Shown here in pieces: positions 1,890 to 62,327 of a DNA stretch of 64,000 bases. Position 1 is the stretch's first letter, and each line of letters opens with the position of its first letter. The notes beneath the pieces were generated by a model, which worked only from the letters and a program-made list of their open reading frames with translations, was not told where the DNA came from and searched no databases. The stretch lies in the sequence record NC_061443.1; one strand, given 5' to 3'. The translations under genes were made by a program, and so were the position numbers.

Positions 1890-2918
1890 TTATTCCTCCA
1901 ATACGCCACTAATCTCCGCAAACATATTCTTGTAGACCAAGCTACCGCCCAGCTTGTCCAATCTGTCAACGAGAACATAGAGTTTCGGTGAGGTGCGCAT
2001 GTTAGCCCACGTCTTCTCATTCGGGTCAAGTCCACCAACAGTCGGCACGATGACCATACTGAGGTTGACGTTAGCTCGAACGAAACCAATGTCCATGTGA
2101 TTCCTGTTTATGCTTCTGAAAAGCCTGTTGATTGCGTCCAAACCTACAGGCTTATTGAATTCCGTATCATTAACAGTATTGACCAAACTTACAAGAATAC
2201 CAGGGTCCTTACTCTCTATATCAAACAGTGCTGTCTTGAGGTCACCGAGAGTAGAGGCAGAGTAATACGCCACGTCGTGGCCGAAGTCTTTCAAACAACT
2301 ACCAAGCGCCCTCGAGGATTCAATATGCGCAACGTTATCATCACGCAAGATGTATACAGGAGCATCAGGCTGGTACGTGCGCTTGGTGATCATGTCGATA
2401 AGCTCACAAGAAGGGCGACCAACAGTGGCCAGCCCTTTGTTTGCGATAAAAAACTTATCTTTATACATGCTGTAGATGTTCGGCGGCATGTATTTCATGT
2501 AGTCGTCATCGAGACTAAGAATCATTCGTGGGTGAGTAATCTGGAGAACGAGTTGCATACTACGCAGAGATGCTTTGTACTCCGAATCAGAAAGCACACG
2601 GCTGATCGGGAGATACTGCACAACAACGAACCTGTCGTCGATAGAATCCACAACGGAACGAATCAACGTACTGCCTAGCGTAGGTCCTGCGGAGAACTGA
2701 GTGACTATCATCAAGCTGTTCTTGACCATACCTCCAGACGAGGCAACAGTAACACTGTTACCCGCCTGCTCCACAGAAGACTCCCACGTTATGGCTGGGC
2801 TGTCTCGTCCGATATCGGCATGTACATAAGCTGCGCCACACCAGAGACAGGCTCCAAGAAGGTAAGCAGCAATACGTTGTCCGGATCGGCCTCGGCTGGA
2901 TTGACAGTCTCGGGCCAT
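1890..2918 (-). CDS. secreted/periplasmic hypothetical protein
   Basis: AGGAG 7 nt before ATG 2918; signal-peptide-like N-terminus RIAAYLLGACLWCGAAYVHA|D. Overlaps the upstream gene by 130 nt. Confidence 0.65.
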   Translation of the reverse strand: MARDCQSSRGRSGQRIAAYLLGACLWCGAAYVHADIGRDSPAITWESSVEQAGNSVTVASSGGMVKNSLMIVTQFSAGPTLGSTLIRSVVDSIDDRFVVVQYLPISRVLSDSEYKASLRSMQLVLQITHPRMILSLDDDYMKYMPPNIYSMYKDKFFIANKGLATVGRPSCELIDMITKRTYQPDAPVYILRDDNVAHIESSRALGSCLKDFGHDVAYYSASTLGDLKTALFDIESKDPGILVSLVNTVNDTEFNKPVGLDAINRLFRSINRNHMDIGFVRANVNLSMVIVPTVGGLDPNEKTWANMRTSPKLYVLVDRLDKLGGSLVYKNMFAEISGVLEE

Positions 2919-3616
2919 AGCACTTCTCCTCTCGCGTCAGTGACGTAAGGAATGCCGGCGCCTTTACCCAATCCATGACGTAAGGCCCAAACAGTATCGG
3001 CATTCTCCTGCACGAACACTAACCCTTTGACCTGCACATCAGATGTTGCATTCTCCAGTACCTCAACACGCTTCTCAAGAAGCTCGGCATCAGATTGCAG
3101 CACACGAATAGCAGACAGGTTAGAGTTAACGCGCTGGTTCATGTTGTTGAACATGGTGAAGAACGAGTTGTTCATCGCCGTGCGAACGCCGTCCGTATAG
3201 GACTTAGGAATTAGTTCATCGTTGTCAAACGTTGTTACGCCTGTACGAGCGAGAACTTTACCGGTAAGACGTCCACCACTTGCGCTAATGATTTGAGGGG
3301 CAGGTAAATCTGCTTCGTCCCAAACCTGAACAGTGGTCATCACCGTATTGTAGTCGGTCTCTTCCTGCCACGTATTTTTATACGGAGCAGTTGCTGCTTT
3401 AGACTTACGACGCATGACTTTTTTATAGCCAGCGTTTGAGCCGTCAGCGATGATCCAGAGACCGTTCAGTGGAAATACATGAGTAATCGGTTCGGCAAAC
3501 GAAAGAATGATCGTAACGTCTGCCCCTACCTTGTACGCAATATCGTTCGACGCTGAAAGACCTTGCTGTTGGGCAAGGGCAATCAACGTGTCCACGTAGT
3601 TAGTCAACTGGCTCAT
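2789..3616 (-). CDS. hypothetical virion/fibre-associated protein
   Basis: 275-aa ORF in the fibre cluster; short coiled-coil segment followed by a small beta-rich C-terminal domain. Confidence 0.6.
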   Translation of the reverse strand: MSQLTNYVDTLIALAQQQGLSASNDIAYKVGADVTIILSFAEPITHVFPLNGLWIIADGSNAGYKKVMRRKSKAATAPYKNTWQEETDYNTVMTTVQVWDEADLPAPQIISASGGRLTGKVLARTGVTTFDNDELIPKSYTDGVRTAMNNSFFTMFNNMNQRVNSNLSAIRVLQSDAELLEKRVEVLENATSDVQVKGLVFVQENADTVWALRHGLGKGAGIPYVTDARGEVLWPETVNPAEADPDNVLLLTFLEPVSGVAQLMYMPISDETAQP

Positions 3617-4078: not shown

Positions 4079-4900
4079 TTAATCTCCTTGAGCTGTGTAC
4101 CAGAAGTCCCAGCCAACGGTGTTCGTGCCGCTAGACTTAATGGTAAAGCCACCTAACAAGGCGTTCTCGTTCATCGCACTGGTACCGTCCAAGTTGTACA
4201 GCGTGTACGTCTTAGATTGGTTCGTTGCAGCATTCACAAAGGTGATTTGAAGGCTAATACAACGGTTGATGAACGGGCTGTTGAAGATAACGTGAATGGT
4301 ATCAGTTGTAGACTTGTTCACTACGCGACCCATGTTCTGGGTGTAGCCTGTGTTCATGTCTCGATTGCTACCAACCCACGCGTTCACAATAGGCGCGCCA
4401 GTTACTGGGTCAAGTGCCTGCGATGTACGATATTCATCAATCGCAGAGTCACGTCCTGGGTTACCCGTCGGGCCTGTAGCTCCCGTAGGACCTACTGCGC
4501 CTGTGTTACCGGTTGCGCCTACGGGGCCAGTGTTACCAGTAGGACCGTTACGTCCACGAGGACCACGAGGACCCGGGCAGCCATCGGAGCCGTCGCGACC
4601 ATCACGACCGTTAGCACCAGACAGTCCACGCAGACCCTCTTTACCTTGTTTACCTTCACGGCCAGACTTGAGTTGGTCAGAAGTAGGCAAACCAAGAACG
4701 TTTGACTGACTCCCGTCTGGCCAGACGATAGTGAGCGTACCGGTAGTAGTATCGAACTGAGCACCCTGAGAGCCTGGAATCTTCGCAGCTTCCTGCGGGT
4801 CGATGAACGCTACCGCAGTCGAAGTCTTCTTACCCAATACTTTGCCAACGGGGTCTGAACCGCCGTCGATAAGTGAAGGGTTAATTCGTGTTAAAGACAT
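4079..4900 (-). CDS. collagen-like fibre protein (paralog 4)
   Basis: 24 uninterrupted Gly-X-Y triplets (GRE...GRD) after an FD..TG.L...GLPT domain; C-terminal beta domain resembling tail-fibre tip domains. Confidence 0.85.
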   Translation of the reverse strand: MSLTRINPSLIDGGSDPVGKVLGKKTSTAVAFIDPQEAAKIPGSQGAQFDTTTGTLTIVWPDGSQSNVLGLPTSDQLKSGREGKQGKEGLRGLSGANGRDGRDGSDGCPGPRGPRGRNGPTGNTGPVGATGNTGAVGPTGATGPTGNPGRDSAIDEYRTSQALDPVTGAPIVNAWVGSNRDMNTGYTQNMGRVVNKSTTDTIHVIFNSPFINRCISLQITFVNAATNQSKTYTLYNLDGTSAMNENALLGGFTIKSSGTNTVGWDFWYTAQGD

Positions 4901-4910
4901 GGGTGAGCTC

Positions 4911-5114
4911 CTAACCAGTCAGTGTTGTCCAATCAGGTTGACCCGATTGTCCGGCTTCTGGATTTTTGACTTTCGTGTTGTTGATTGTCATGCGAATCCA
5001 ACGAACAGTTCCGTCTGTATCTTGCCACCGGACCTTCGTGCCACCGTATGCTAAATTAGCTACCCATCTGTCTCTGCTAGGGTCTTTGAATGCTAAACGT
5101 GCATATGCAGGCAT
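4911..5114 (-). CDS. small hypothetical protein
   Basis: 67-aa ORF filling the gap between fibre genes; AAGGA RBS-like sequence upstream. Confidence 0.6.
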   Translation of the reverse strand: MPAYARLAFKDPSRDRWVANLAYGGTKVRWQDTDGTVRWIRMTINNTKVKNPEAGQSGQPDWTTLTG

Positions 5115-5123
5115 AAGTTTTCC

Positions 5124-8000
5124 TTACTCGATTTCACTCGGTTCCCAGCAGAGGATAGGTCGACGCCACACTTGGAACACACCAATAGGTGCAGCACGGT
5201 TGTCATCAATGAAGCAGTCCATTGTACGACCTCCGCTGTTACCGCTCTGCATTAACACCTGCAGGTTAGCAATCCACGAAGCACGTCCACCAGAGTCAGC
5301 CTCAAACAACCCTTCCCATACCATGTCGAAAGCACCATTCCACGCATTGAAGTGATGCGAAGAATAAGCGCCGTCGCCTACAGAACACAAGATCATGTAC
5401 TGATAATCTTTGACACAAGGGATGCCGTAGTTGTTACCACGAGGAACAGTCGCACTGTTATTGTTGAAGATACACTCCCAACCAGTACGGTCCGCTGAGC
5501 CTGTTGTCAAGAACAACGGTCTACGGATGATCATCATGATACCGTTCTCACCACCGTTGTTACTGGACTTCTCGCAATACGCATTGCAGCGCAGCGCACG
5601 GTCTACAGTGAATGTAGTCGAGTTGGAGAAGTCACGGCAGTAGTAGTTCGACCCCCACTTAGGCAGATACTCTGCTGGTGGTACAAAGAAGTGGCGTTCA
5701 GCAAGTTCAACATCACCGTAGCGGTCATACGCAAATACGATGTACTCGTAGCCTGCTTCGATCTGAATGTTATGTCCTTGTGTGCCGGGCCCATTCCACT
5801 TCCAGACAACCTGCCAATCGTTCGTGTCACGGTCAGGCATTTCAGTGATAAGCTGATACGGACGCTCATACACATGCCACACTTTCCCTTCTTCTGTCGT
5901 GTTGATATACAGAGAACTAGGGTCGTTGATGTTACCGTTAGACGTACCGCAATATACTTTATGCGATGCACCAGCAGAGTTATAGATAGTGCCTGAGCCG
6001 ATAGAACCAAACATGTCCCAGTTCATCATCAGGTGAGAGGTACACATTTCGTTCTGGCCTGCCCCGTCCGAGGTCGTAAGCAGATACTCGTTAAGGTCCT
6101 TGAACGCATAGCGCACGTAGTTAGAACCTGCACGGTTGACACGATGTACCCAGTCATGAGATTGAACTTTCGGCACAGGGAAGCATGGGTTAGTGACAGA
6201 CACGACGAAGTTTTTAGTTTCGTACATCGGCAGTTTCTTGAAGCGGTTATCACGAATCGTTACTGTGTGCTTCATGCCGTATGTCTGCGCACCGTCCATA
6301 CCACCCAACACTTTGTAGTACGACTCATGCGCACTCTTGGTATTTTCGTACAAACCAGTGATACCAAGACCAACGTTACCTGCACGGTCTGTACCACAGC
6401 AGTAAGGCACATTGCCTGAATCGAAGTCAAAGCCGACCGAGTAGTAACTATCAGGAGAACTCGATTTAGGTCCCCAGTAGAGTTCAGTGTATGCAGAACC
6501 CTCGCCAATTCCAGGCTCACCGAACACGCAGTACGCAGCACGATAAACATACTGGCTGCCTTGGAACACACGGCGCGATGCACCAATGCGATACATAGCA
6601 GCAGGTAGTCCGCCCTGCACACGGTTAACGTCGGCTGTATCATAAGACACAACGAAGACATAACAATCGGTGCCAATCGAATTGAGGAACGCAGCACAGG
6701 CAGCAGCGTTAGCAGCACCTGGGTTAGTACCTTCGGCCGATGCGTGAATGTCAAACGAGCGGCGTTCAAGCAGCGCAAGGTCTGACTTACGAATTTTATA
6801 GACGTTCAGGCCACGAGTGTCGTTGTATTGAGTACCTGCGTATACAGTATAACCTAAATCACCTGTATCGAGATGGCGTTGATATCCTACGACGTGAGAG
6901 AACAGACGGCTTCGTGCCTGTAGCGATTGGCCATTCTGATTCGACCACGAGACTGACACATCGCCCGCAGCAAGGCGAGCGGCCCAGTCGTCAGGCTTGT
7001 AGGGATACGTTGTCACATCGAAATTAACACCGTATGCCGAGCCAGGTTCTACGCAGCACGGGTCACGGTAGATGATAGGCGGATCGATCACAACGTCATC
7101 AGGTATATCAACTTGACCGCAGTATAACTGCTTCCACGTACCTGGCTGACCTCCCAGTGATCCAGGCCCAGCAGCAGGCGTGGTGTTGAACTGATAGATA
7201 GCAGACGTGCGATAGTTAATCTGGTTATGCAGTTGAGGAACGTTAGTCCACGCTACATGGTTACCAAACGAGTTGATACTCTTATCGTGAGCGGCTTTAG
7301 TGGAGACAACATAAGCTTGCCCATTGCTTCGAATACCTAACGGGTTGAAGATAGCATTGAAGTTAACGTTACCTTCATAGGCATTCTTCTGCAACACAAT
7401 CAGACTAACACCGTTACGATGCGCTTCCCGTATTGCAGTCAACATCGCAGTAGGCATACTTTGGTTTGTTGCCGACAGCAGAAGCATTACGCAACTGAAC
7501 TGTTTGAAATAGCGATAGTCACCATTGTAGCCGTATGCACCAGCGTTAATCTCCTGCCAGCTATGTGCTAACATATCTAGAGGCATACGTTGCATATAAC
7601 CTACAAGCTGTCCCCAAGATTCCATTGAGGTATCATCAGAGACAGGAGCAAGGTCAGAGATGACGAGCATTGTGCTGCCATTGGTGATATTCGAATTGTA
7701 GCCGCGCTGTGTCAAGAAGTGGCGTAACACGCCCATATTGTTGATGGATTTGTTTCTGTAATTACCCAACCAACCGTAGTTTGCGTCAACCAGAGGGCTA
7801 CCGTCACGAACGAATTGCCCGTTCATGAACGCTGCACCGAAACCACACACATAAGCCAACGCATGACCATCTACAACGAACGAGGTGAAACGTGAGGCAT
7901 CGACACCCATCGCATCTACCGCAGCCTCTGTACCGTTTCCAGGGCTGCCGCTGAACACTGGAGTAATACCTCTAGCATACAAGCAACTTTGTTGTAGCAT
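5124..8000 (-). CDS. large tail fibre/receptor-binding-like protein with ILEI/PANDER-like domain
   Basis: 958 aa; segment RGLNVYKI...SFDIH...AAFLNSI...VFVVSYD...YRAAYCVFGEPG resembles the ILEI (FAM3/GG-type) motif pattern; aromatic-rich repeated C-terminal modules. Confidence 0.6.
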   Translation of the reverse strand: MLQQSCLYARGITPVFSGSPGNGTEAAVDAMGVDASRFTSFVVDGHALAYVCGFGAAFMNGQFVRDGSPLVDANYGWLGNYRNKSINNMGVLRHFLTQRGYNSNITNGSTMLVISDLAPVSDDTSMESWGQLVGYMQRMPLDMLAHSWQEINAGAYGYNGDYRYFKQFSCVMLLLSATNQSMPTAMLTAIREAHRNGVSLIVLQKNAYEGNVNFNAIFNPLGIRSNGQAYVVSTKAAHDKSINSFGNHVAWTNVPQLHNQINYRTSAIYQFNTTPAAGPGSLGGQPGTWKQLYCGQVDIPDDVVIDPPIIYRDPCCVEPGSAYGVNFDVTTYPYKPDDWAARLAAGDVSVSWSNQNGQSLQARSRLFSHVVGYQRHLDTGDLGYTVYAGTQYNDTRGLNVYKIRKSDLALLERRSFDIHASAEGTNPGAANAAACAAFLNSIGTDCYVFVVSYDTADVNRVQGGLPAAMYRIGASRRVFQGSQYVYRAAYCVFGEPGIGEGSAYTELYWGPKSSSPDSYYSVGFDFDSGNVPYCCGTDRAGNVGLGITGLYENTKSAHESYYKVLGGMDGAQTYGMKHTVTIRDNRFKKLPMYETKNFVVSVTNPCFPVPKVQSHDWVHRVNRAGSNYVRYAFKDLNEYLLTTSDGAGQNEMCTSHLMMNWDMFGSIGSGTIYNSAGASHKVYCGTSNGNINDPSSLYINTTEEGKVWHVYERPYQLITEMPDRDTNDWQVVWKWNGPGTQGHNIQIEAGYEYIVFAYDRYGDVELAERHFFVPPAEYLPKWGSNYYCRDFSNSTTFTVDRALRCNAYCEKSSNNGGENGIMMIIRRPLFLTTGSADRTGWECIFNNNSATVPRGNNYGIPCVKDYQYMILCSVGDGAYSSHHFNAWNGAFDMVWEGLFEADSGGRASWIANLQVLMQSGNSGGRTMDCFIDDNRAAPIGVFQVWRRPILCWEPSEIE

Positions 8001-8020
8001 GTTAAGTCCTTAAGATCGAC

Positions 8021-8043
8021 AAGAGGGGCCGAAGCCCCTTCTT
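8021..8043 (-). terminator. hairpin, possible intrinsic terminator
   Basis: AGGGGC-TTCG-GCCCCT stem-loop immediately after the stop of 8043..10064; U tract is weak. Confidence 0.5.
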
Positions 8044-10064
8044 TATCCAAATACTATTTCAGTGATTGCCAGATAGGTCAAATCGTTTGAGTCACCTCTA
8101 TCCCCGCCACCATGATAGTACAACCACACCTCTTCTCCTACAGGTATGTTCGTATCAAACGTAAAGCGCTGGAGAACGTTGGACCTACTCGCTACATCCT
8201 GTTCTGCTCCTGCACCTGCATAGCGCTCATATATACTGATGCCATGCCAGCCTCCGTTTCGACCGTCATACACCCAGTCGAACGTAATGCTCTTGATTGG
8301 TCTAGTGAAGAAGTTGTTCCACTTGAACCATCCACTGGTGCCGCCCCATAAGTTTTTGTAATCACCATCCCAAGCTGTGAGATTGCTTACGTCACTGCTG
8401 ATACCACGCCCGCCAGTCTGGTCAAACGTGTAGCAATACCAAGGGAATGTATCAGATTCAGGAGGCAGCGCACTACCACCAGCTATCGACACGCAGCGAT
8501 AAGGAACCGTGAAGTCACTTACGTTGATATGTGGAGGCTGAATAGGACAGTACACGTAGTACGACCAATCACATCCGATAGGTGCAGTCACGCGCACAGT
8601 GATGTTAGCGCGAAGCACATGCTCAGGGTATTTCCAAAATTCGAGTGTGCCAGTACGTCCTGCAACAACGATAGCCGTATCAAGCAGGTTCATGTTCTGG
8701 TCAAACACTTCGAACTTGGTATCAAACGAGTTCGCCACACAAACAATAAGCTCGGCGCGAATGTCCGTCTGAGTTCCTAATGCAAAATTATCTTCTGTAG
8801 TTGGATGACCGGCAGAGTAAACGCTGTAGCTCTGGCAAGGGTGCATATACTCACGCGCACCGCGTTCACCAGGACAGTACAGGCTGTAGAAGCAACTAGC
8901 CAGTGACGCAGCATTACCGAAGTCTTTACTGACAACACGCACCATGATATCACACGCAACACCCTGAGGGTCGAAGTAGAAGTACAGGTAACCTTCTCCA
9001 GTCTGAGCATCAAGCGTTGTTGCAATACGACGACCTGATTGATAGATCTCAATGAAGTCGAACGTTTCCCATGAGGTGTAGTCGAGATACATCCAGCCTG
9101 CTACCCAACCGATGAAGTGGTAGTATTCGAAAGCGTTAGAGTTCTGAATACGTTCCGTAATCGGCCAGACAGTCGCATGACACGGCGCAGGGAAGATAGG
9201 GCTGCCGATGTAGTCTGGATGAATGACGTCAGGGAAATTGATAACGTCATAAGCAGCCTGACTATCGAGAGCTAACCCACCACGGTCCGAAGGCGCAGCA
9301 AGACGAGGTGGATAGACTTCAAGGCTCCAACCGTAACCCTGCGTTGTGCGCACACGTACCATGATACGCATATCAGCAGCGTCAGGGTCAAACTGGAATT
9401 TAATGCGAGAACGACCTGCTACTTTACCGCACGTAGAAGCAACACGCACACCCATGTGATATACGTCAACACTCGCACCGGCAGGGGCATACGAAGCAAT
9501 CATCAGTTCGACGTAGCCTTCAATAGCAGGCATCGCATAGATTGTCTCTGTCACTACTGCACCACGTCCATGAGTAGACGCGTATGGTACGTTAGGGTTA
9601 GCGTAGGTACCTAAGCCGGAACGAGAAGCAACACCAACAGGGTCGTAAGTCTCGATGGTTTTGATACCTGGGCGATTAATCGATCTACCAGTCGGAGGAG
9701 CAAAAGAATTAACGAGGCCGAAGCCAGTACGACCAGCGTCAGGCAAGTCGAAGCCAGCTGGATAGCCTTTGAGTATGTCATACTTCTCACGACCTCCTGA
9801 GCCAATCCCGTTACCTGAGCCTTTGGTTGTAGATGTAGGACCGCCACCACATGCACCCGTCTCAACGTTCGAACACGGGTCATCATATGTAGGGTCGAAC
9901 GAGTCATCAATTAGATGCCAGCGCTGACCCCACTGATTACGCACACTGAACTTCTCAGGAACTAGAGGAGTCCAGTCACCTTCTGGTGTGCGTATGAACA
10001 TGGGCGTGTCCACACAGTCATGCCAACCGTTATTCGCAGCATTACGAACGCGAAAACGTGACAT
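8043..10064 (-). CDS. virion structural protein with three internal beta-domain repeats
   Basis: 673 aa; three repeats with pattern (V/I/F)(D/E)(V/I)(Y/F)...(K/Y/E)F..(D)P...I.VRV...W..Y.P. Confidence 0.65.
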   Translation of the reverse strand: MSRFRVRNAANNGWHDCVDTPMFIRTPEGDWTPLVPEKFSVRNQWGQRWHLIDDSFDPTYDDPCSNVETGACGGGPTSTTKGSGNGIGSGGREKYDILKGYPAGFDLPDAGRTGFGLVNSFAPPTGRSINRPGIKTIETYDPVGVASRSGLGTYANPNVPYASTHGRGAVVTETIYAMPAIEGYVELMIASYAPAGASVDVYHMGVRVASTCGKVAGRSRIKFQFDPDAADMRIMVRVRTTQGYGWSLEVYPPRLAAPSDRGGLALDSQAAYDVINFPDVIHPDYIGSPIFPAPCHATVWPITERIQNSNAFEYYHFIGWVAGWMYLDYTSWETFDFIEIYQSGRRIATTLDAQTGEGYLYFYFDPQGVACDIMVRVVSKDFGNAASLASCFYSLYCPGERGAREYMHPCQSYSVYSAGHPTTEDNFALGTQTDIRAELIVCVANSFDTKFEVFDQNMNLLDTAIVVAGRTGTLEFWKYPEHVLRANITVRVTAPIGCDWSYYVYCPIQPPHINVSDFTVPYRCVSIAGGSALPPESDTFPWYCYTFDQTGGRGISSDVSNLTAWDGDYKNLWGGTSGWFKWNNFFTRPIKSITFDWVYDGRNGGWHGISIYERYAGAGAEQDVASRSNVLQRFTFDTNIPVGEEVWLYYHGGGDRGDSNDLTYLAITEIVFG

Positions 10065-10073
10065 ACATTCTCC

Positions 10074-10565
10074 TTATGGACGGACCCAGATGGCACCAGC
10101 TTCGATCTCATTGTCGATGGCAGGGTCAGTGTCTTGCACAAAGACCATCACTTTACCTGGGTTGCCGGGAGCACCTGTTGGGCCTATAGGACCAGTAGGA
10201 CCCGCAGGACCTCTGTTACCGACATAGCCCTGCTTGCCTTGATTACCGTCTGAACCACGCGGGCCCGGGCAACCATCAGTACCACGACGACCGTCACCGC
10301 CCATCAGACCATCAAGACCATCTCGCCCGGAAGCACCTACGCCACCTTCAGGTCCATAGCCGATGCTATGAATAGTAGGCAGCCCTGCGATTTGCAGCTT
10401 ACCGATTGTAGGGATGTTCAGTGCGAGCACACCAGTCAGTTGGTCAAACGACCCACTAAGTGTGCTGTAGTCTTCTTCGATATCGACGGACACGCCGCCT
10501 TGAGTCGCTACTACAGGACCAGAAGCATTAGTCTTGAGTAGCGTAATATCAACCTTCTCTACCAT
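10074..10565 (-). CDS. collagen-like fibre protein (paralog 3)
   Basis: 23 Gly-X-Y triplets after the FD..TG.L...GLPT domain; ends in VFVQDTDP...AGAIWVRP. Confidence 0.85.
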   Translation of the reverse strand: MVEKVDITLLKTNASGPVVATQGGVSVDIEEDYSTLSGSFDQLTGVLALNIPTIGKLQIAGLPTIHSIGYGPEGGVGASGRDGLDGLMGGDGRRGTDGCPGPRGSDGNQGKQGYVGNRGPAGPTGPIGPTGAPGNPGKVMVFVQDTDPAIDNEIEAGAIWVRP

Positions 10566-10574
10566 GATTGCTCC

Positions 10575-11207
10575 TTACGGCCAGGTAGTGCCTTGATCTT
10601 TAGTAGGGTCCACCCAGATAGTCCCGGCAGCAACAGCGCCCGGCTGGGTAGCACTTACGATGATAGACAGACGACCCGCAGGACCTGCTGCGCCTGTAGC
10701 TCCGGTAGGACCTGTAGCCCCTGTCTTACCTGTAGGGCCTGTGCCTCCACGAGGGCCAGTAGGGCCGGTAGGACCCATCGGGCCTGTGCGACCATCTGGT
10801 CCCGTAGGACCTACAGGGCCAGGCAGACCATCGCGACCATCTGGGCCAGGAACACCTTGCTCTCCATCAGGACCGATATCACCATCACAGCCTTGCTCGC
10901 CTGCATTACCGTCACGCCCGTCACGCCCATCTTTACCATCAGCGCCTGTCTCACCTCTACCGCCTTGACGTCCTTCAGGGATATCAGAAGCAGTAGGGAA
11001 GCCACTTACTTTGACAGTCTGGCCGTTAGCGAACTTGAGTGTCAAGATACCGCTAGTCGCATCGAACGACGAATCACCTGTCAGTTCAGAAGGTACTTCC
11101 GAGTCGTCAGGGTTGATGGTTAACGTGCCTTGAGAAGCACGAATGGCAGTAGGCGTAGAAGACGCACCAGCTTGAATGAGGCCAGTATTTACTTTAATCA
11201 GACTCAT
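10575..11207 (-). CDS. collagen-like fibre protein (paralog 2)
   Basis: 34 Gly-X-Y triplets after FD..SG.L...GFPT; ends in IIVSATQP...AGTIWVDP. Confidence 0.85.
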
Positions 11208-12649
11208 TACGTTTTCTCCGCTTTCGCAACAATATCCGTGTTGTGTACAAGCACATCACCAACGAAGTAGCAATCGAATGGGTCAACGTCAATATCAACG
11301 GTCTGCACTTGTTCGTCTACACGGCGCATCTCCGATACAGAGACAGGACCCTTGCGACCAAGAACAGTCTGACCCGCTTGCACATCACGCGCAGGAACAT
11401 AGCGCCACACAGCATCGTCGTAAATCAAAACAGGATGTTCGTGCGTGAACTTCTGTCCATTGATAACGTAATAATGATCTTCTTGACCGAGTACGAGAGC
11501 TTTAACAGTCGCATACACGGTTGTGCCCTTGAGACTAGGCGAAGACCAGTTACGAAACTCTTTAGGCTGGTTAGAATAGCCAAGCAGCGCATCACCTACA
11601 CGCAGTTCTTCGACTTTCTTACGGCCAACAATTGTTTCAACGTCAGAGCCATACACGATACAGCCGGATGTTGCAGTGTTGATAGGGTTACGTGCAACGA
11701 CAGTCAACGCAGACTTAGCAGTGACAGTAGGGCGCGACGTTTGACCCATATCAGTTACCAGACAGCTAATGGTGCCTTTGATGATTCGATCAGCACCCAA
11801 GCCCAGTCTCAGGTAGAAGTTAACAATGCAGGTGTTTGTCTCCGTAGCGTCGAGAGTCACACCTTCTGTGGTAGTGATAGTCCATTTGTACTTATACGGA
11901 CCGACACCGCCACGCGCATTGACAGGGAGATACGCCAGCGACGTAAACACATCAGAGCCTTGCACTGTACGTTGACCAACCATATACAGGCTAGACACTG
12001 ACGCAGCAAGAGGGGTTATCGTAGGCAGAGGAGGTGCAGGAGTAACGTTCGTCGTAGGGTACAACCACACGAATACTTTACTATCGAGTGGCTGGGTAGA
12101 CGATAGCACGGCTGTAGTGATAGGCGCTGGGCCAGTGGCTCCAGTTGCACCCGCAATACAGTTAGGACCGTCATTACCGCGCGGACCGATAGGACCCGTT
12201 GGCCCTGTATTACCGTCAGGCCCTGTAGGACCGTCTGGGCCCATGCGACCCGTGTCCCCATCTGGACCGTCGTCGCCGTCTCGCCCAGGATCGCCTACAG
12301 GACCTGTCTTACCCCTATTACCCACACCACCTGGACAACCTTGTCTGCCAGTCTCACCGTCTCGACCATCACGGCCAGGACGACCGGGAGAACCCGGAGC
12401 GCCGCGACGCCCAGGTTTCCCTTCACCAAATACTGATACAGTAGGCAGACCGGGAACGTTAACTAACGTCCCGTTCTTCTTGATGAAGACCAACACACCT
12501 GTCTTGCTGTTAAATCTTACGCTGGCGAGCTGTGTTAGTGTTGCCACATCGGAGTTTTCAAACTGAACACCTCCGTCAACGCCGACTAAGGATTTACCCT
12601 CGTCATTCTGCGTTGTTTCGATTTGCGAAAGTTTTAACTGTGTTGTCAT
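11207..12649 (-). CDS. collagen-like fibre protein (paralog 1) with C-terminal Hint (intein-like) domain
   Basis: 29 Gly-X-Y triplets, a beta-rich middle domain, then C(IVYGS)...FTHEHP...VDIDV...LVHN/T, the intein block A/B/F/G pattern, at 11240-11662. Confidence 0.8.
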
Positions 12650-14985
12650 TTCGGTTCAACCTTAATGCACAAGTTACCAGTTAGCTTCGAACCGTAGCTA
12701 GTGATCTGCGAATCGGTGATGCGCACCTTAGCGACGATATCAATGAAGCCCTGCGGCTGGTTCTCAATCAGTACAGTGAACATTTGCGTAAGGCTAACGT
12801 TTGAATAAGCAATCACTTCTGTCAGGCTTGCATCAGAAGTAACAACGTTGAACCCTGCGCTGCCCGTACCTTTAAGACCACGACCGTATTCAGCTTCTGC
12901 CGTGCCTGGGATTTTGAATGACAGGACATACTCGATATGCTCTTTCCCGCTGGTGGCCGCAAAGCCAGGACCCAGTTGACACTGGAAGTCAGCGATACAA
13001 GTAAGCATCACACCCTTCGAGAAGTCGATTCGCTGAGTGATTGTCAGCTCCTCTGAATCCGATACAGTCTGGTGTATGTTGAACATGTTCTTCGGGTCAG
13101 CTTCTTCGGCGAGTGCCTGAGTATTGCTGATCGTAATCTCCGGCCACGTACCTTTAATCAGAATACCTTCACCCTGAATGATAGCGGGCGCAGCGATAGG
13201 CACGTCAATCGGAGGCAGACCTTGACGCTTAAACATGTAGCCTGTTGGAGTAGGGATAGCGTCGATGATAACACCATCAACAGAACTATCTTTCGAGCCT
13301 ACTGCCATGACGTTCTCGAAGATTGTGATCTCAACGAGCGTGTCAGCAGGAACAGGTGACGATGTTTTCAACGCATTACCCGCGACAGTAAAGTCCATAG
13401 GGTGTACAGTCAAGCCGCCCATAGCCATAACGCAGTGCGCTTTATTCAGAGGCGTAGTTGGCAGAACAAATGTATCAGCATCATAAGGCAGGCGATACTG
13501 AGCAACACGAATACGAGTAGACCAGTTGGCTCGTTCTTCATAGCGGGCCACATAGAATGAATAGCGTTGACCAGACGGGATAGCTTCGGTCAGCGTTACC
13601 TTGTTACCTGCGTTGAGTTTGTAGACAGTTGTTGGCTGCCACGTACTCCCCACAACACAGAAGACCATATCAACGCTATCAATCGGTTTGTTGCCGAGAG
13701 TAAACGTTGTAGTCTGTCCGTCACCTGTACCTTCGTATGTTTCAAACAGGACGACATGACCTTGAGAAGGCTCGATGCGGAACTGTCTTAGATCAAGCGA
13801 CATACGCTGTTCAGGGAACGATGAAAGCAGAAGCTGGTCATCGACAACGCTGTACGCGGTGCGAGGCTGTAGGACACCTGACGTGCCGACGAATAAATCA
13901 GTCGAGCTATCAAGGTTCTCCGACAGTGTGTAGCGCATCTTGTCAGGAGTTGCAGTTGTCACGACAGAACTAAACAGCATCTTGCCTGGAGGTACAAACA
14001 ACGTCGCAGTAGTCTGACGGGTAGACCCACCAACAGGTGCCCAGTAAGGTTTGTTATCCTTACCGCGCATCAGCGCCCAAGTGTCAGGCACCTCATTGTT
14101 GTCAGGCCAAGGCAGACCCGCAGAAGGCGTAGTCGGGTTAGTGATTCGACGCCAGATAGCGATAGTCGTTTGAGCAGAGATGAATGGGATAGCACCGTCT
14201 TGGTTTACAAGCTGTCCGCCTATGTATTTGAAGTGACGACACGCACCTGCTCCAGTTCCTGCGATTGTCTGAATGAGTACAATCTCATTCTCTTTAAGAA
14301 CACCAGCAAGGCTAGCAATCTTAAACGTGTTAGCGTTGATGAAACCAGCAGTCGTGATCTGACCACTGAACAAACGGTCGTGCTCGCTGAATCCCCAATA
14401 ATAGGAACCAGCACCGTAACGGTAAGCAACACCAGGAGATTTAGAGCCATCCGAGTTAACGTGCATATCAAGTACCGACACGGCATTGAACACGTTATCT
14501 TTTAAGCTCGGCAGATTCTCAAGCGTAGCCACACTCGGGATAGAAGTGTAGTCTGCCATTTTAACAGCAAGAATCTTTTGAATGTCCTGCTGGATATGTA
14601 CGAGCAAGCTCACGCGACTGATACCGTTCGGCACAGCGATGATAGGCTCTTCCAGAACAACGTGCCCAAAAGGACGGTTGTCAGAGAGCATGATCAACAG
14701 CTCACCTACACGCTTCATCTGTTCGCCAGCGACGTAGTTGATTTTAATATCGAAGACAAATCGGGCACTGTTCTCGGTAAGTACCTGAACATAGGACAGG
14801 GCGCCCGACGCAAGCTCGTTGCCAAGTAACTGCTCTGGAACCACTGATGGGTTTGAGCCTACAAAGTCACCTGCTTTAAACGACACTGGCTGAACTGCTA
14901 GTCCGCCAGAGTTAGCGTTCGCAACGGCCTGTTCTCCCTGAGGCGTTAAACGCAGAGCGTCAACGTAGATAGATTCAGTGGCCAT
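12646..14985 (-). CDS. baseplate-attached tail fibre / tail-collar fibre protein
   Basis: N-terminus LTPQGEQAVANANSGGLAVQPVSFKAGD resembles the P2 gpH-type N-terminal (DUF3751-like) region; repeated GDG.TT.F.L...P modules. ATG at 14985 has an AAGGAG RBS (ORF track starts at TTG 14988). Confidence 0.6.
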   Translation of the reverse strand: MATESIYVDALRLTPQGEQAVANANSGGLAVQPVSFKAGDFVGSNPSVVPEQLLGNELASGALSYVQVLTENSARFVFDIKINYVAGEQMKRVGELLIMLSDNRPFGHVVLEEPIIAVPNGISRVSLLVHIQQDIQKILAVKMADYTSIPSVATLENLPSLKDNVFNAVSVLDMHVNSDGSKSPGVAYRYGAGSYYWGFSEHDRLFSGQITTAGFINANTFKIASLAGVLKENEIVLIQTIAGTGAGACRHFKYIGGQLVNQDGAIPFISAQTTIAIWRRITNPTTPSAGLPWPDNNEVPDTWALMRGKDNKPYWAPVGGSTRQTTATLFVPPGKMLFSSVVTTATPDKMRYTLSENLDSSTDLFVGTSGVLQPRTAYSVVDDQLLLSSFPEQRMSLDLRQFRIEPSQGHVVLFETYEGTGDGQTTTFTLGNKPIDSVDMVFCVVGSTWQPTTVYKLNAGNKVTLTEAIPSGQRYSFYVARYEERANWSTRIRVAQYRLPYDADTFVLPTTPLNKAHCVMAMGGLTVHPMDFTVAGNALKTSSPVPADTLVEITIFENVMAVGSKDSSVDGVIIDAIPTPTGYMFKRQGLPPIDVPIAAPAIIQGEGILIKGTWPEITISNTQALAEEADPKNMFNIHQTVSDSEELTITQRIDFSKGVMLTCIADFQCQLGPGFAATSGKEHIEYVLSFKIPGTAEAEYGRGLKGTGSAGFNVVTSDASLTEVIAYSNVSLTQMFTVLIENQPQGFIDIVAKVRITDSQITSYGSKLTGNLCIKVEPK

Positions 14986-15014
14986 CAAAGAACTCCTTGG
15001 GTTTTAACTGTTCT

Positions 15015-48316: not shown

Positions 48317-49192
48317 TTAACCTCTCAGTGCACCACGCGCCCAGGACTTAGCGAGAGCCAGAGTCATGCGGCTTGGGTTTTGCAGTTTGACTTCACCTTT
48401 GTGGACAGCAGTGAACGGTTCATGCGCGTTCTCTCCGCGACCCGAACGATAGGCTGCTTCATTGAAGCCGTCGAATAACGTCACGACCCAGCCTGTGGAT
48501 TTGTCAGAACACTCACCGCAGGCTTTGTCCCAGCTAATCTTACCGCACACACGTCCACCCGCATTAACCGCGTAGCTTACTTGCTCAGTGCCTTTATAAA
48601 CGTCTTGAGCTTTCAGCGTTTTGAACGTCACACGCGCAGCAGACTCAGAACGCGGCGTCATCTTCTCTTTCAGTGCTTCAATATCAAGTGAAGACCAGAA
48701 GGATTCAAACAGTGCCGCGAACTTCTGTTCGATAGGCAGGTCGATAGCATTGATCTGTGCGATGGTGCTTGAGCTATCGTTGAGCACACGGTTGATAAAG
48801 TACCCACCGAGGATGATTGGCATTTGAGTGCCTTGATCTCCAGTCGTTAGCCCAGCACGTTTCGCATACATCTCACACATCCCGATAGCAAGACGCGCCA
48901 TAGTCTGGAACGTCTGCTTCTCGGTACTGTTGGCGATCTCAGTGTAGATACGGCTTGCAATTGCAGGAACAACTGTACGCTTCGCTACACTAAGAATGTC
49001 TTCTGGTGTGATTGATTGACCGAGTTTCTTCTTGGCCGCGAGTTCGAAAGCGTTAATCAGGCTTGCTTTGTTCGCTGGTGTCAGAGACTCGCTCAACTTG
49101 ATAGTTGTCTCCTCCGAGCTGTTCACCAGACTCGGCTGCGGTGCCACCTTCAGTCTGCGAACTCCCGTCGTCTTCAATCGAGCTACTGTCAT
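48317..49192 (-). CDS. hypothetical protein (candidate head protein)
   Basis: 291-aa ORF with CAGGA RBS; IKLSESL motif near the N-terminus. Confidence 0.65.
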   Translation of the reverse strand: MTVARLKTTGVRRLKVAPQPSLVNSSEETTIKLSESLTPANKASLINAFELAAKKKLGQSITPEDILSVAKRTVVPAIASRIYTEIANSTEKQTFQTMARLAIGMCEMYAKRAGLTTGDQGTQMPIILGGYFINRVLNDSSSTIAQINAIDLPIEQKFAALFESFWSSLDIEALKEKMTPRSESAARVTFKTLKAQDVYKGTEQVSYAVNAGGRVCGKISWDKACGECSDKSTGWVVTLFDGFNEAAYRSGRGENAHEPFTAVHKGEVKLQNPSRMTLALAKSWARGALRG

Positions 49193-50297
49193 TTGTTTCT
49201 TCCTGATTAGGAGCCTGCATGTACTGCAACAGGCCAGAGTTCATAATCTCCTCGTTAACGTCAAGGCCACGGAGCGTAGCCAGATTAGCGAGGTAATTGA
49301 GAGCAGGTTCGACCATACCCAGATTACGACAGCCCCAGTAGGCAATGTCATAGCACAGGTCTAAATTAATAGCAGTCTGGTCGAACAAGAAACTTTTTGG
49401 ATTCTGCTTTGTAGCTTCAATCCCTTGAATCGCTTGTCCGATAGCATTGATGTTATCGCCACGGCGGTAGAAGATATCAGACAGCATAGCATACGCTTCA
49501 ATACGATCAGGGCGGAATGCAATCGCACGATAACAAGCGCACACAGCCTCATGAATGAAGCCTTGTTTGAACGTAGCTTTCGCCAGTTCGATGTTAGCGA
49601 TTGTAACGTAATCAGGCCACTTAGCAATGCCAGTCAGTCTGTCTACCTCACGGCGCGCATCTTCCAGCAGGTCAGGACGTTCATAATAGATGACTGAATA
49701 GCAGAGTTCACGCGCATAGTAGAAACTGCAACGGTCATCATGCGGATAGTCACCTACATCCAGACCGAGTTCCAGCAGATAGTTACGTGCTTTTTCGTGG
49801 TCTGGATAGTGGTCAGTTGCGAACGGCGCTTCAACCGATTTCAGTTGCTGACCAGGCTTACGCGAGGACAGGACTTCATGCGCACGATATTTCCAGAAGT
49901 AAGAGCGACGACGATACGCTTTCATCTGCTGGTAGTGACTGTCACCGTTACGCATCAGAATCCAAACAGCTTCTGCTTTCTTGATGCCTTGCGTATTGCG
50001 TAGCGCCTCAACCCAGTTAGGGTCATCGAAGCGCTCGTCAATATCGAGCCACACTACAAGGTCGTCTTCCGAGAAAGGCGTAGCGGCCAACTCACGGCTT
50101 GCACCTAAGTTACGTTCAGGACTAACGTCGAACGTATGATAGATGTTAGGGTGAACGAACGCCGAGATGATGTTCGTGGTTTGGTCTTCGCTGCCTGTGT
50201 CAACGATACTGATAGCGTCAGCACCAGCAACGTGTTTCAACCACTCACCGATATTCTTTTCTTCATTACGGCAGATAGCCGCTACGCAGATTCTCAT
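49053..50297 (-). CDS. glycosyltransferase family 2 with C-terminal TPR repeats
   Basis: ICRNEEKNI, IVDTGSEDQT, DxD motif WLDIDE, HYPD..K.RNYL, then helical repeats (..YR.IAFRPDRIEAY). GAGG RBS. Confidence 0.88.
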   Translation of the reverse strand: MRICVAAICRNEEKNIGEWLKHVAGADAISIVDTGSEDQTTNIISAFVHPNIYHTFDVSPERNLGASRELAATPFSEDDLVVWLDIDERFDDPNWVEALRNTQGIKKAEAVWILMRNGDSHYQQMKAYRRRSYFWKYRAHEVLSSRKPGQQLKSVEAPFATDHYPDHEKARNYLLELGLDVGDYPHDDRCSFYYARELCYSVIYYERPDLLEDARREVDRLTGIAKWPDYVTIANIELAKATFKQGFIHEAVCACYRAIAFRPDRIEAYAMLSDIFYRRGDNINAIGQAIQGIEATKQNPKSFLFDQTAINLDLCYDIAYWGCRNLGMVEPALNYLANLATLRGLDVNEEIMNSGLLQYMQAPNQEETNDSSSIEDDGSSQTEGGTAAESGEQLGGDNYQVERVSDTSEQSKPD

Positions 50298-61541: not shown

Positions 61542-62327
61542 TCACTCCATTACCAGATAGGTTACAGTGAGTTTCGGTTTCGATGGTGATGTACCGATAT
61601 TCTTCATACGCCACGAAATCGTAGGCGAGTTGTCTTTGTTGGACAAGAAGCTATATCGACGCAGCTTACGAATAACAGGATTACCCTCGCTATCCACATC
61701 TGTGAACACGCCATCATCTTCGAGGAAATTAGCAGTGGAGCGGAATAAATACGGGTTTCTGTCATCTCGTTGTGCGGTAGGGAACGCAGAGAGTTCCACG
61801 TCAAACGCATTGAGTTGGACAGACAGCAACATCACCGTACGGTTCATCTGCAAGTCAAAGTCAACCTGCTGTCCCGGAGTGATGTAGGCAGGAGATTCAT
61901 ACTCCACCGTCTTACGCACACCTGCACTTTCATTGCCACTCAAGTCAGCCCAGAACATCGTACCGTTAGCACCAGACACTAGGGTCATACCCGCGTATTC
62001 AGGTTCAGGCACTTGCTTACTTGGGTCGAGGCCTACAACAGTCAGACCTGTTTCATCCACAGCGGTGACGAATGGCGATTCGAACTTATACTCCGAGCCA
62101 CCAAACTTCGCTTCTTCCCACGTCACGTTGTCAGCACCAAGTTGATACATCTTCTTGGTCTCGGTGACGTAACACAACATCCCAGGCTTTTTATTACCTA
62201 CGGACATTGCATCACGTAACGCGAGTGTAGCAAGACAACGCATACCCCCACGAAGATATACGTCTTCGAGGAGGTATGGAAGCGCTGCGGATGCTGGCAA
62301 CAGGAACGAAGTCATGTATACCGGCAT
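61542..62327 (-). CDS. fibre-associated structural protein
   Basis: N-terminal LRGGMRCLATLALRDAM...GMLCYVTETKKMYQL module of a type common at fibre N-termini. Confidence 0.55.
   Translation of the reverse strand: MPVYMTSFLLPASAALPYLLEDVYLRGGMRCLATLALRDAMSVGNKKPGMLCYVTETKKMYQLGADNVTWEEAKFGGSEYKFESPFVTAVDETGLTVVGLDPSKQVPEPEYAGMTLVSGANGTMFWADLSGNESAGVRKTVEYESPAYITPGQQVDFDLQMNRTVMLLSVQLNAFDVELSAFPTAQRDDRNPYLFRSTANFLEDDGVFTDVDSEGNPVIRKLRRYSFLSNKDNSPTISWRMKNIGTSPSKPKLTVTYLVME

Follow-up and report, generated by a model that had tools for sequence, protein, structure and literature searches.

A conserved in-helix cysteine and paralog-specific stalk lengths in four collagen-like fiber proteins of a hairy jumbo phage and its relatives

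Introduction

Why should four collagen-like proteins encoded in one phage gene module each carry a single cysteine at the same place of the triple helix? The question is raised by a window of 64,000 nucleotides (the whole stretch of DNA analyzed here), which matches with 100% identity the genome of Erwinia phage pEa_SNUABM_2 (NC_061443), a 265-kb "hairy" jumbo myovirus of the genus Alexandravirus; base 1 of the window corresponds to about base 62001 of the record. We refer to the four proteins as A (gp104), B (gp108), C (gp109), and D (gp110), and to the cysteine in the tenth Gly-X-Y triplet as Cys10. A first-pass annotation, made from the DNA sequence alone, had suggested that these chains may coassemble into disulfide-registered heterotrimers, or else plug interchangeably into a common socket on the virion.

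Collagen-like stalks are common in phage fibers and are usually treated as passive spacers. Here, we find that both the cysteine and the stalk lengths are fixed in four paralogs across a clade of jumbo phages infecting Erwinia, Dickeya, Yersinia, Pseudomonas, and Alcaligenes, which implies a precise fiber architecture, one probably held by covalent ties. A literature search returned no description of the conserved in-helix cysteine of these phage collagen-like fibers or of the fixed length per paralog, and no structure of these phages.

Results and Discussion

Anatomy of the Four Collagen-Stalk Proteins

The list of open reading frames (ORFs) places all four genes on the minus strand, at the coordinates given in the first-pass annotation, and a script confirms their common plan: a domain with the motif F(D/N)xx(T/S)GxL...G(L/F)PT (the N-domain), exactly 6 residues of linker, and an uninterrupted Gly-X-Y helix, which counts 24 triplets in A, 23 in B, 34 in C, and 29 in D. 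The tenth triplet reads GCP in A, B, and D and GCD in C, with the cysteine at the X position and no other cysteine in any of the helices. The first ten triplets are charged (Arg/Lys, Asp/Glu), with Arg/Lys enriched at X and Asp at Y, and the later part is rich in Pro and Thr; both features agree with the earlier description, which had named GPT and GAT triplets for the later part. The post-helix W-x-x-P cores that had been reported for B, C, and D (WVRP, WVDP, and WLYP) are likewise present, within a T-x-P ... W-x-x-P motif. All four proteins pass the Pfam Collagen model PF01391 (43-55 bits against a cut-off of 27.2), and no other ORF in the 64-kb window has at least 12 Gly-X-Y triplets. The region contains no broken genes. 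In single-chain AlphaFold2 models, the predicted local distance difference test score (pLDDT) of the helix region is below 50, as expected for one chain. The features are as follows (aa, amino acids).

4079..4900 (-): A = gp104, 273 aa; N-domain, 24-triplet helix, C-terminal beta-sandwich knob; RefSeq "tail fiber protein"; Pfam Collagen E 7.5e-15
4664..4900 (-): A N-domain and 6-residue linker, aa 1-79
4448..4663 (-): A Gly-X-Y helix, 24 triplets, aa 80-151
4577..4579 (-): A Cys108 codon, X of triplet 10; invariant in the A-family alignment
10074..10565 (-): B = gp108, 163 aa; N-domain, 23-triplet helix, 24-aa tail ending WVRP
10149..10355 (-): B Gly-X-Y helix, 23 triplets, aa 71-139
10269..10271 (-): B Cys99 codon, X of triplet 10, sole cysteine of B
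10077..10148 (-): B post-helix tail, T-x-P ... W-x-x-P motif
10575..11207 (-): C = gp109, 210 aa; N-domain, 34-triplet helix, 30-aa tail with WVDP
10668..10973 (-): C Gly-X-Y helix, 34 triplets, aa 79-180
10887..10889 (-): C Cys107 codon, X of triplet 10, sole cysteine of C
10578..10667 (-): C post-helix tail, T-Q-P ... W-V-D-P motif
11207..12649 (-): D = gp110, 480 aa; N-domain, 29-triplet helix, junction cysteine, WLYP hairpin motif, immunoglobulin (Ig)-like domain, predicted C-terminal Hint/bacterial-intein-like (BIL) domain
12161..12421 (-): D Gly-X-Y helix, 29 triplets, aa 77-163
12335..12337 (-): D Cys105 codon, X of triplet 10; nearly invariant in the D-family alignment
12158..12160 (-): D Cys164 codon, Gly slot of would-be triplet 30; invariant in 27 sequences and in distant orthologs
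11684..12037 (-): D Ig-like beta-sandwich middle domain, about aa 205-322; AlphaFold2 pLDDT 80-94, Ig-fold matches
11240..11662 (-): D predicted Hint/BIL domain, aa 330-470, Cys ... His-Asn

Beyond triplet 10, the stalk continues for 14 triplets in A, 13 in B, 24 in C, and 19 plus 4 pseudo-triplets in D.

Conservation of the Cysteine and of Stalk Length

For comparison, the same module was taken from 18 further phages of at least nine genera, covering Alexandravirus, Sasquatchvirus, Snuvirus, Rivsvirus, Salmondvirus, Yoloswagvirus, and Baikalvirus, as well as Lu11, HRDY3, NCTB, Yersinia phage fHe-Yen9-02, and Alcaligenes phage Afa-NA1. All four paralogs are present, in the same gene order, in every genome examined. 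A varying cysteine position among orthologs had been named in the first-pass annotation as an outcome that would refute its proposal; instead, a cysteine stands at X of triplet 10 in 69 of the 71 distinct helices (A, 17/17; B, 18/19; C, 18/18; D, 16/17). The exceptions are the D ortholog of JA11 and Lu11 gp238, and the latter still has its cysteine in the tenth slot when a Gly-to-Ala break is counted. Cys10 is the sole X or Y position that is invariant across all four families, whereas within single families further such positions are invariant (several Asp in C, for example).

Helix length is constant per paralog, at 23 triplets in B, 34 in C, 29 in D, and 24-25 in A, and this constancy holds across N-domain identities as low as ~17%. 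The single change of length is found in A, which has 48-49 triplets in Lu11 and HRDY3, with B, C, and D unchanged in these phages.

A cause of the shared cysteine at the level of the DNA was considered and dropped. Comparison of the paralogous genes shows collagen periodicity of only 60-76% and no long identity, a DNA repeat comparison gave no sign of recent gene conversion between the paralogs, and both TGT and TGC are used for Cys10 in every family. The use of both codons, with no long DNA identity among the paralogs, indicates that selection acts on the cysteine residue itself.

A profile of the four N-domains was also run against 1.84 billion proteins, giving 66 representatives, of which 55 have the same layout. 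The cysteine is at X of triplet 10 in 40 of these 55 and within about one triplet of it in 4, and 11 lack it. In two of the four near-misses, and in a B-type protein of the L021 contig, the linker is 3 residues longer and the cysteine sits one triplet earlier; since the longer linker is offset by the earlier cysteine, the conserved quantity is the distance from the N-domain with its PT motif.

The N-Domain and the Relationships among the Paralogs

Within one genome the N-domains of the paralogs share ~23% identity on average and 39% at most. Across genomes, the orthologs group by paralog, both by nearest neighbor (47/50) and as four clades in a neighbor-joining tree, indicating that the duplications are older than the spread of this phage group and that there has been no concerted evolution. 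No Pfam or NCBIfam family and, by sequence, no PDB entry was found to be related to the N-domain, and the Pfam family PF19079 (CFSR) did not match any of the four even at E up to 10. The core of the domain (F-D-x-x-T-G-x-L-T-L) recurs three to five times per protein in the unrelated metagenomic proteins P0024, P0030, and P0038, where each copy is flanked by short collagen runs; P0024 has a sub-threshold match (21 vs. 27 bits) to the Pfam "collagen-flanked surface repeat". Such recurrence between collagen runs fits a small trimer unit that nucleates the triple helix.

The idea of a common virion socket fares well as far as the homologous proximal module is concerned, with N-domain, 6-residue linker, ten charged triplets, and cysteine shared by all four proteins, a plan that is usual in phage fibers docked by their N-terminus. 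The second half of that idea, interchangeable plugs, does not stand: the N-domains have diverged to the extent given above, they group by paralog, and all four are retained in each genome examined, which together suggests four old, distinct docking roles built on a common design.

Distal Ends of the Fibers

AlphaFold2 models of A and D were built from small alignments. Past its helix, A ends in a confidently modeled beta-sandwich (pLDDT 71-90), which in fold searches weakly matches the homotrimeric tip of the R2 pyocin tail fiber (6ct8; E 9e-4, template modeling (TM) score 0.24-0.26) and, in BFVD, also Gp53-like C-terminal fiber domains. This knob, with its weak matches, may be of receptor type. 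D carries an Ig-like domain, and B and C have no distal domain, their helix being followed only by a short, Trp-containing tail of 24-30 residues. The post-helix motif of B and C had no match in a profile search of the PDB. A kinship with known C-terminal trimerization hairpins such as the foldon of T4 fibritin is thus not supported by sequence.

The C-terminal domain of D resembles the BIL domain 2lwy both in fold (E 1.3e-8, TM score 0.79) and in sequence (E 1.2e-4), and its second-best fold matches are the BIL domains of the Tetrahymena BUBL locus (6y75). Its residues C330, H469, and N470, that is, the first-residue Cys and the terminal His-Asn, are nearly invariant, and only 10 residues follow the domain. 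Its Pfam scores are below the cut-offs (PT-HINT, 23.8 vs. 27.7 bits; Hint_2, 21.3 vs. 28.4 bits), while the relative P0101 passes (28.6 vs. 28.4 bits). The D ortholog of JA11 ends 8 alignment columns ahead of the Hint Cys, and it is this natural end point just before the domain that leads us to see the predicted Hint domain as most likely a self-removing C-terminal module.

Two side observations concern the same protein. Among D-type proteins, Cys10 is absent only where the Hint domain is absent (L012, L021, P0004, P0016, P0041, P0056, P0061, and P0062); several other Hint-less D-types retain the cysteine (PaBG, Lu11, HRDY3, P0047, and P0043), and a link between the two features was considered but not established. 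Sequence searches of the PDB with C and D returned animal collagens, through their Gly-X-Y repeats, and the BIL domain for D; a 780-residue chain labeled "spindlefibril" and "axialfibril" (8zxl/9ius) matches the collagen part of D with E 6e-24, far above most collagen chains.

The helix of D ends at a junction marked by Cys164, after which three further Gly-X-Y triplets follow. Every D ortholog has this second cysteine, those without Cys10 among them.

Proposed Role of the Cysteine

From the anatomy, conservation, gene context, and distal folds, which are observed, we infer homotrimers, N-terminal docking, and a disulfide with its partner. Put together, and by analogy with systems discussed below, we tentatively propose that A-D are four homotrimeric fibers of the baseplate/tail-fiber module which share a proximal module and in which Cys10 takes part in an intermolecular disulfide. 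The beta-rich N-domain of ~70 residues would dock the fiber and start the triple helix in a fixed register, which would account for the invariant linker of 6 residues. Ten charged triplets follow, and the single cysteine lies in the tenth. Side chains at X positions point outward from the collagen triple helix and are solvent-exposed, so that a homotrimer would present three thiols at one axial level. With a rise of 2.9 Å per residue (PMC3368898), the 29 residues that separate this level from the N-domain would span about 8 nm. Once the particle is in oxidizing surroundings, the thiols may form intermolecular disulfides, either with the Cys10 of a neighboring fiber or with a Cys-rich neighbor protein, for which gp106 and gp107 are candidates. 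The cross-link would pin the fibers covalently at a set height, as in collagen VI, and the stalk past Cys10 would serve as a ruler specific to each paralog, with a distal end of its own. Because B and C have no other cysteine, any disulfide of theirs must use Cys10.

Several points weigh against this proposal. Cys10 has been lost from D in JA11-like and L021-like phages (in the former, A, B, and C retain it), and with the 11 representatives lacking it among the 55 this means that the cysteine is not indispensable. Among the neighboring proteins there is no single, unique conserved partner cysteine, only the candidates gp106 and gp107. Phage particles are assembled in a reducing cytoplasm. The three thiols of a trimer are an odd number, so at least one would stay free unless trimers pair. 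A fold search with the A and D models gave no structural match to the N-domain (model pLDDT 52-74). The presence of A-D in the virion is suggested by RefSeq annotation only ("virion structural protein", "tail fiber protein"), and a gel study of PaBG virions gives 14 abundant proteins, with none evidently collagen-like in the part of its table considered.

The fixed distance of Cys10 from a register-setting N-domain would also suit a folding staple, that is, a transient or permanent disulfide within each homotrimer that helps the chains to align and to zip up from the N-domain and links to nothing else. Transient interchain disulfides of the P22 tailspike do form in the cytoplasm and are tied to chain registration (PMC3357383), and the invariant second cysteine of D at its helix end resembles a junction staple. 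The geometry speaks otherwise: X side chains are on the outside and ~1/3 turn apart between chains, so that by this reasoning a disulfide between X residues of one level should be strained, three cysteines cannot all pair, and the known collagen knots have two cysteines per chain at the helix end instead of one inside. We regard a staple as unlikely.

Assembly in the cytoplasm would be no obstacle if there were no disulfide at all and Cys10 remained a free thiol, making a packing contact with a docking partner, or a shared metal ligand, at the edge of a buried proximal segment. Metal sites are common in phage fibers, and the conserved Arg/Asp stripe at triplets 4-8, with Cys10 at its distal edge, looks like a binding surface. 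Where Cys10 is lost, however, it is replaced by Asn, Glu, Trp, Arg, Phe, or Pro and not by the Ser or Ala expected for packing, and a cysteine kept this strictly across four families with N-domains of 23% identity is more typical of chemistry than of packing. A free thiol thus seems quite unlikely to us.

Homotrimers or Mixed Chains

The intermolecular cross-link proposed above would join homotrimers to one another or to a neighbor protein, whereas the first-pass annotation had suggested, as one option, disulfide-registered heterotrimers of the four chains. That idea finds no support, on several counts. The helices are unequal in length and fixed so for each paralog; A alone is lengthened in Lu11 and HRDY3, with the other three constant; the distal parts differ (a knob in A, Ig-like and Hint domains in D, a short tail in B and C); and D has lost Cys10 in two lineages in which other paralogs kept it. 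Registration by a cystine knot does not fit either, the cysteine being single, exposed at an X position, and 29 residues inside the helix, whereas a knot would have two cysteines where the helix ends. It is accordingly unlikely that all four chains share a mixed helix, and four fibers, each homotrimeric, are the most likely arrangement on the sequence evidence, with which the resemblance of the A knob to homotrimeric tail-fiber tips is consistent. To our knowledge, no natural heterotrimeric collagen of a prokaryote or a phage has been described.

Charge complementarity between chains was scored in 12 related phages with a crude script of our own, which applies approximate contact rules of the collagen-peptide literature with weights set arbitrarily. 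Mixes of A with C and of B with C score worse than the separate homotrimers in 12/12 phages, which we take as a lead only, and mixes of A with B and of A with D are neutral.

The same score singles out one pair, C and D, which may be considered to form one triple helix (for example, two C chains and one D chain), with Cys10 and the junction cysteine of D locking the register and with A and B as separate trimers. Homotrimers of D score near zero or negative, C/D mixes exceed the separate homotrimers in 11/12 phages, and the mean advantage of mixing is +3.1, compared with +0.9 when the chains are paired across phages. The first post-helix Trp lies 91 residues from X of triplet 10 in one of these proteins and 90 in the other in nearly all 19 phages (in B this distance is 30 residues shorter), and the two helix ends align triplet by triplet, although the lengths are equal only if the four pseudo-triplets of D are counted. 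A cysteine in a Gly slot would disturb a mixed helix less when it is in one chain only, and in pEa_SNUABM_2 the stop codon of D overlaps the start codon of C. That overlap is absent in Y3, JA11, and PaBG, however. The N-domains of C and D are only ~20% identical, and in JA11 D lacks Cys10 while C has it. The score itself depends on approximate contact rules and on weights set arbitrarily, the phages are related and so do not count as independent, and in 11/12 of them the homotrimer of C comes out best of all combinations, which leaves C without a drive to mix. We hold a C/D heterotrimer to be distinctly improbable. An extended form, in which Cys10 and the junction cysteine give the C/D helix a defined register and, after self-cleavage of the Hint domain, the end of D is passed covalently to another virion protein, is a long shot; if true, heterotrimeric, covalently wired collagen would, with C/D, be found outside animals for the first time.

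Gene Module and Location on the Virion

The four genes lie in a baseplate/tail-fiber module, between genes for PAAR, gp25-like, and baseplate-wedge proteins and further fiber-like genes. The order is PAAR, gp25-like, wedge, a 1511-aa tail protein, gp111, D, C, B, gp107, gp106, gp105, and A, and it is the same in all relatives. The neighbors of interest are the following.

12646..14988 (-): gp111, 780 aa; directly upstream of D and overlapping it; weak tail-collar-fiber match at the N-terminus
8043..10064 (-): gp107, 673 aa, 14 Cys; between B and A
5124..8000 (-): gp106, 958 aa, 22 Cys, ILEI-like domain; between B and A

The ILEI-like domain of gp106 scores just over the Pfam threshold. Several of the 22 cysteines of gp106 and of the 14 of gp107 are invariant among the relatives; so high a Cys content is unusual for proteins made in the cytoplasm. 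The stop codon of gp111 overlaps the start codon of D (ATGA, 12646-12649), and that of D the start codon of C (TAATG, 11207), which suggests that gp111, D, and C are translationally coupled in this phage; Y3, JA11, and PaBG have not retained the overlaps.

Three of the four proteins are named in the literature merely as "tail fibre one, two, three", and the position of their genes points to the baseplate or fibers. Some or all of A-D, above all the tip-less B and C, could instead be the thin tail "hairs", docked on sheath subunits and not on the baseplate. Descriptions of Y3, AD1, the JA phages, and Lu11 call these phages hairy, and the hair proteins are not known, with tail fiber proteins named as candidates (PMC6143709). 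Stalks of 20-30 nm in length and 1.5 nm in width would look like hairs, and B and C have no distal binding domain. The genes are not beside those of the sheath, however, and for PaBG only small appendages at the tail end are described. An identity with the hairs is therefore doubtful.

Three further observations were made in the window or among the relatives. The gene gp102 (2789-3616, minus strand) is labeled "HNH endonuclease" in RefSeq and in PHROG 24148; no Pfam domain was found in its product, of which the N-terminal ~110 residues match PHROG tail protein families, and the gene sits in the fiber module of all relatives. The matches and the position make the name doubtful. Alcaligenes phage Afa-NA1 (L015, PV550095) has a record of 78 kb with the same baseplate and collagen-fiber module, in which the N-terminal half of C is matched at 54% identity; the record may be partial, or else the module is not confined to jumbo phages. 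Finally, gp147 (about 49053-50297, minus strand), among the head genes, is annotated as a beta-1,4-glycosyltransferase. Triplets of the GPT/GAT type carry sugars in BclA of Bacillus, and one may speculate about a link between this enzyme and the Gly-Pro-Thr/Gly-Ala-Thr-rich distal stalks.

Comparison with Known Systems

The regularities described here offer a handle on the hairs and the adsorption apparatus of these phages, as they tell which residue deserves attention in maps and in the mapping of disulfides. Natural triple helices of defined length, free of hydroxyproline and with a built-in register domain, may also be of interest to collagen engineering. The collagen-like surface proteins BclA of Bacillus and Scl1/Scl2 of streptococci likewise form hydroxyproline-free triple helices with charged or Thr-rich triplets and a globular trimerizing domain, but they lack a conserved helix cysteine, and A-D lack a cell-wall anchor; the NCBIfam Scl/Lcl models match through the Gly-X-Y part only, with scores of 32-64 bits where the cut-offs are 325-500. 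In its last domain, of 141 residues, D shares the Hint fold with BIL domains (2lwy; BIL2 of Tetrahymena BUBL, 6y75), from which this predicted domain, below the Pfam threshold, differs in its place at the end of a phage fiber, a few residues from the C-terminus.

Functional disulfides do occur in phages in spite of cytoplasmic assembly: the tail and baseplate of phage Milano contain a disulfide network (PMC10811340), and the P22 tailspike has a cysteine annulus. Neither involves a collagen helix, and neither is related in sequence to A-D.

The closest counterparts among phage collagens are EPclA and EPclB, the collagen fibers of Escherichia coli O157 prophages, which are homotrimers with terminal trimerization domains (PMC3368898). 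They share with A-D an N-terminal globular domain and a collagen stalk (of ~30 nm), as well as the presence of several paralogs per genome made from shuffled modules, and they have a trimerizing C-terminal end. EPclA, however, has a coiled coil between N-domain and helix, plus a PfC domain, whereas here the helix starts 6 residues past an unrelated N-domain, contains a conserved cysteine, and has a fixed length for each paralog.

Among animal proteins, C1q, collectins, and the fibrillar and FACIT collagens likewise combine a collagen stalk with a globular head and have cysteines close to the stalk by which the chains are covalently held. Those cysteines lie beyond the helix or right where it ends, as a rule at least two per chain, and the coassembling chains are of equal length, whereas the phage proteins have one X-position cysteine inside the helix and, except for C and D, unequal lengths.

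A nearer parallel is collagen VI, in which each chain has one cysteine inside the helix that is used for disulfides between molecules, giving the dimer and the tetramer, and not within the trimer (PMC12354898). In its alpha3 chain this cysteine is 30 residues into the helix, against 29 here, and both stand at a fixed distance from the helix end. Collagen VI is an animal extracellular heterotrimer, its chain choice is made by a Cys-rich coiled coil, there is no homology with A-D past the Gly-X-Y repeat, and the disulfide of the phage proteins is a proposal. If such a cross-link is real, the fibers described here would be the counterpart, in viruses of prokaryotes, of the route by which collagen VI reaches higher-order assemblies.

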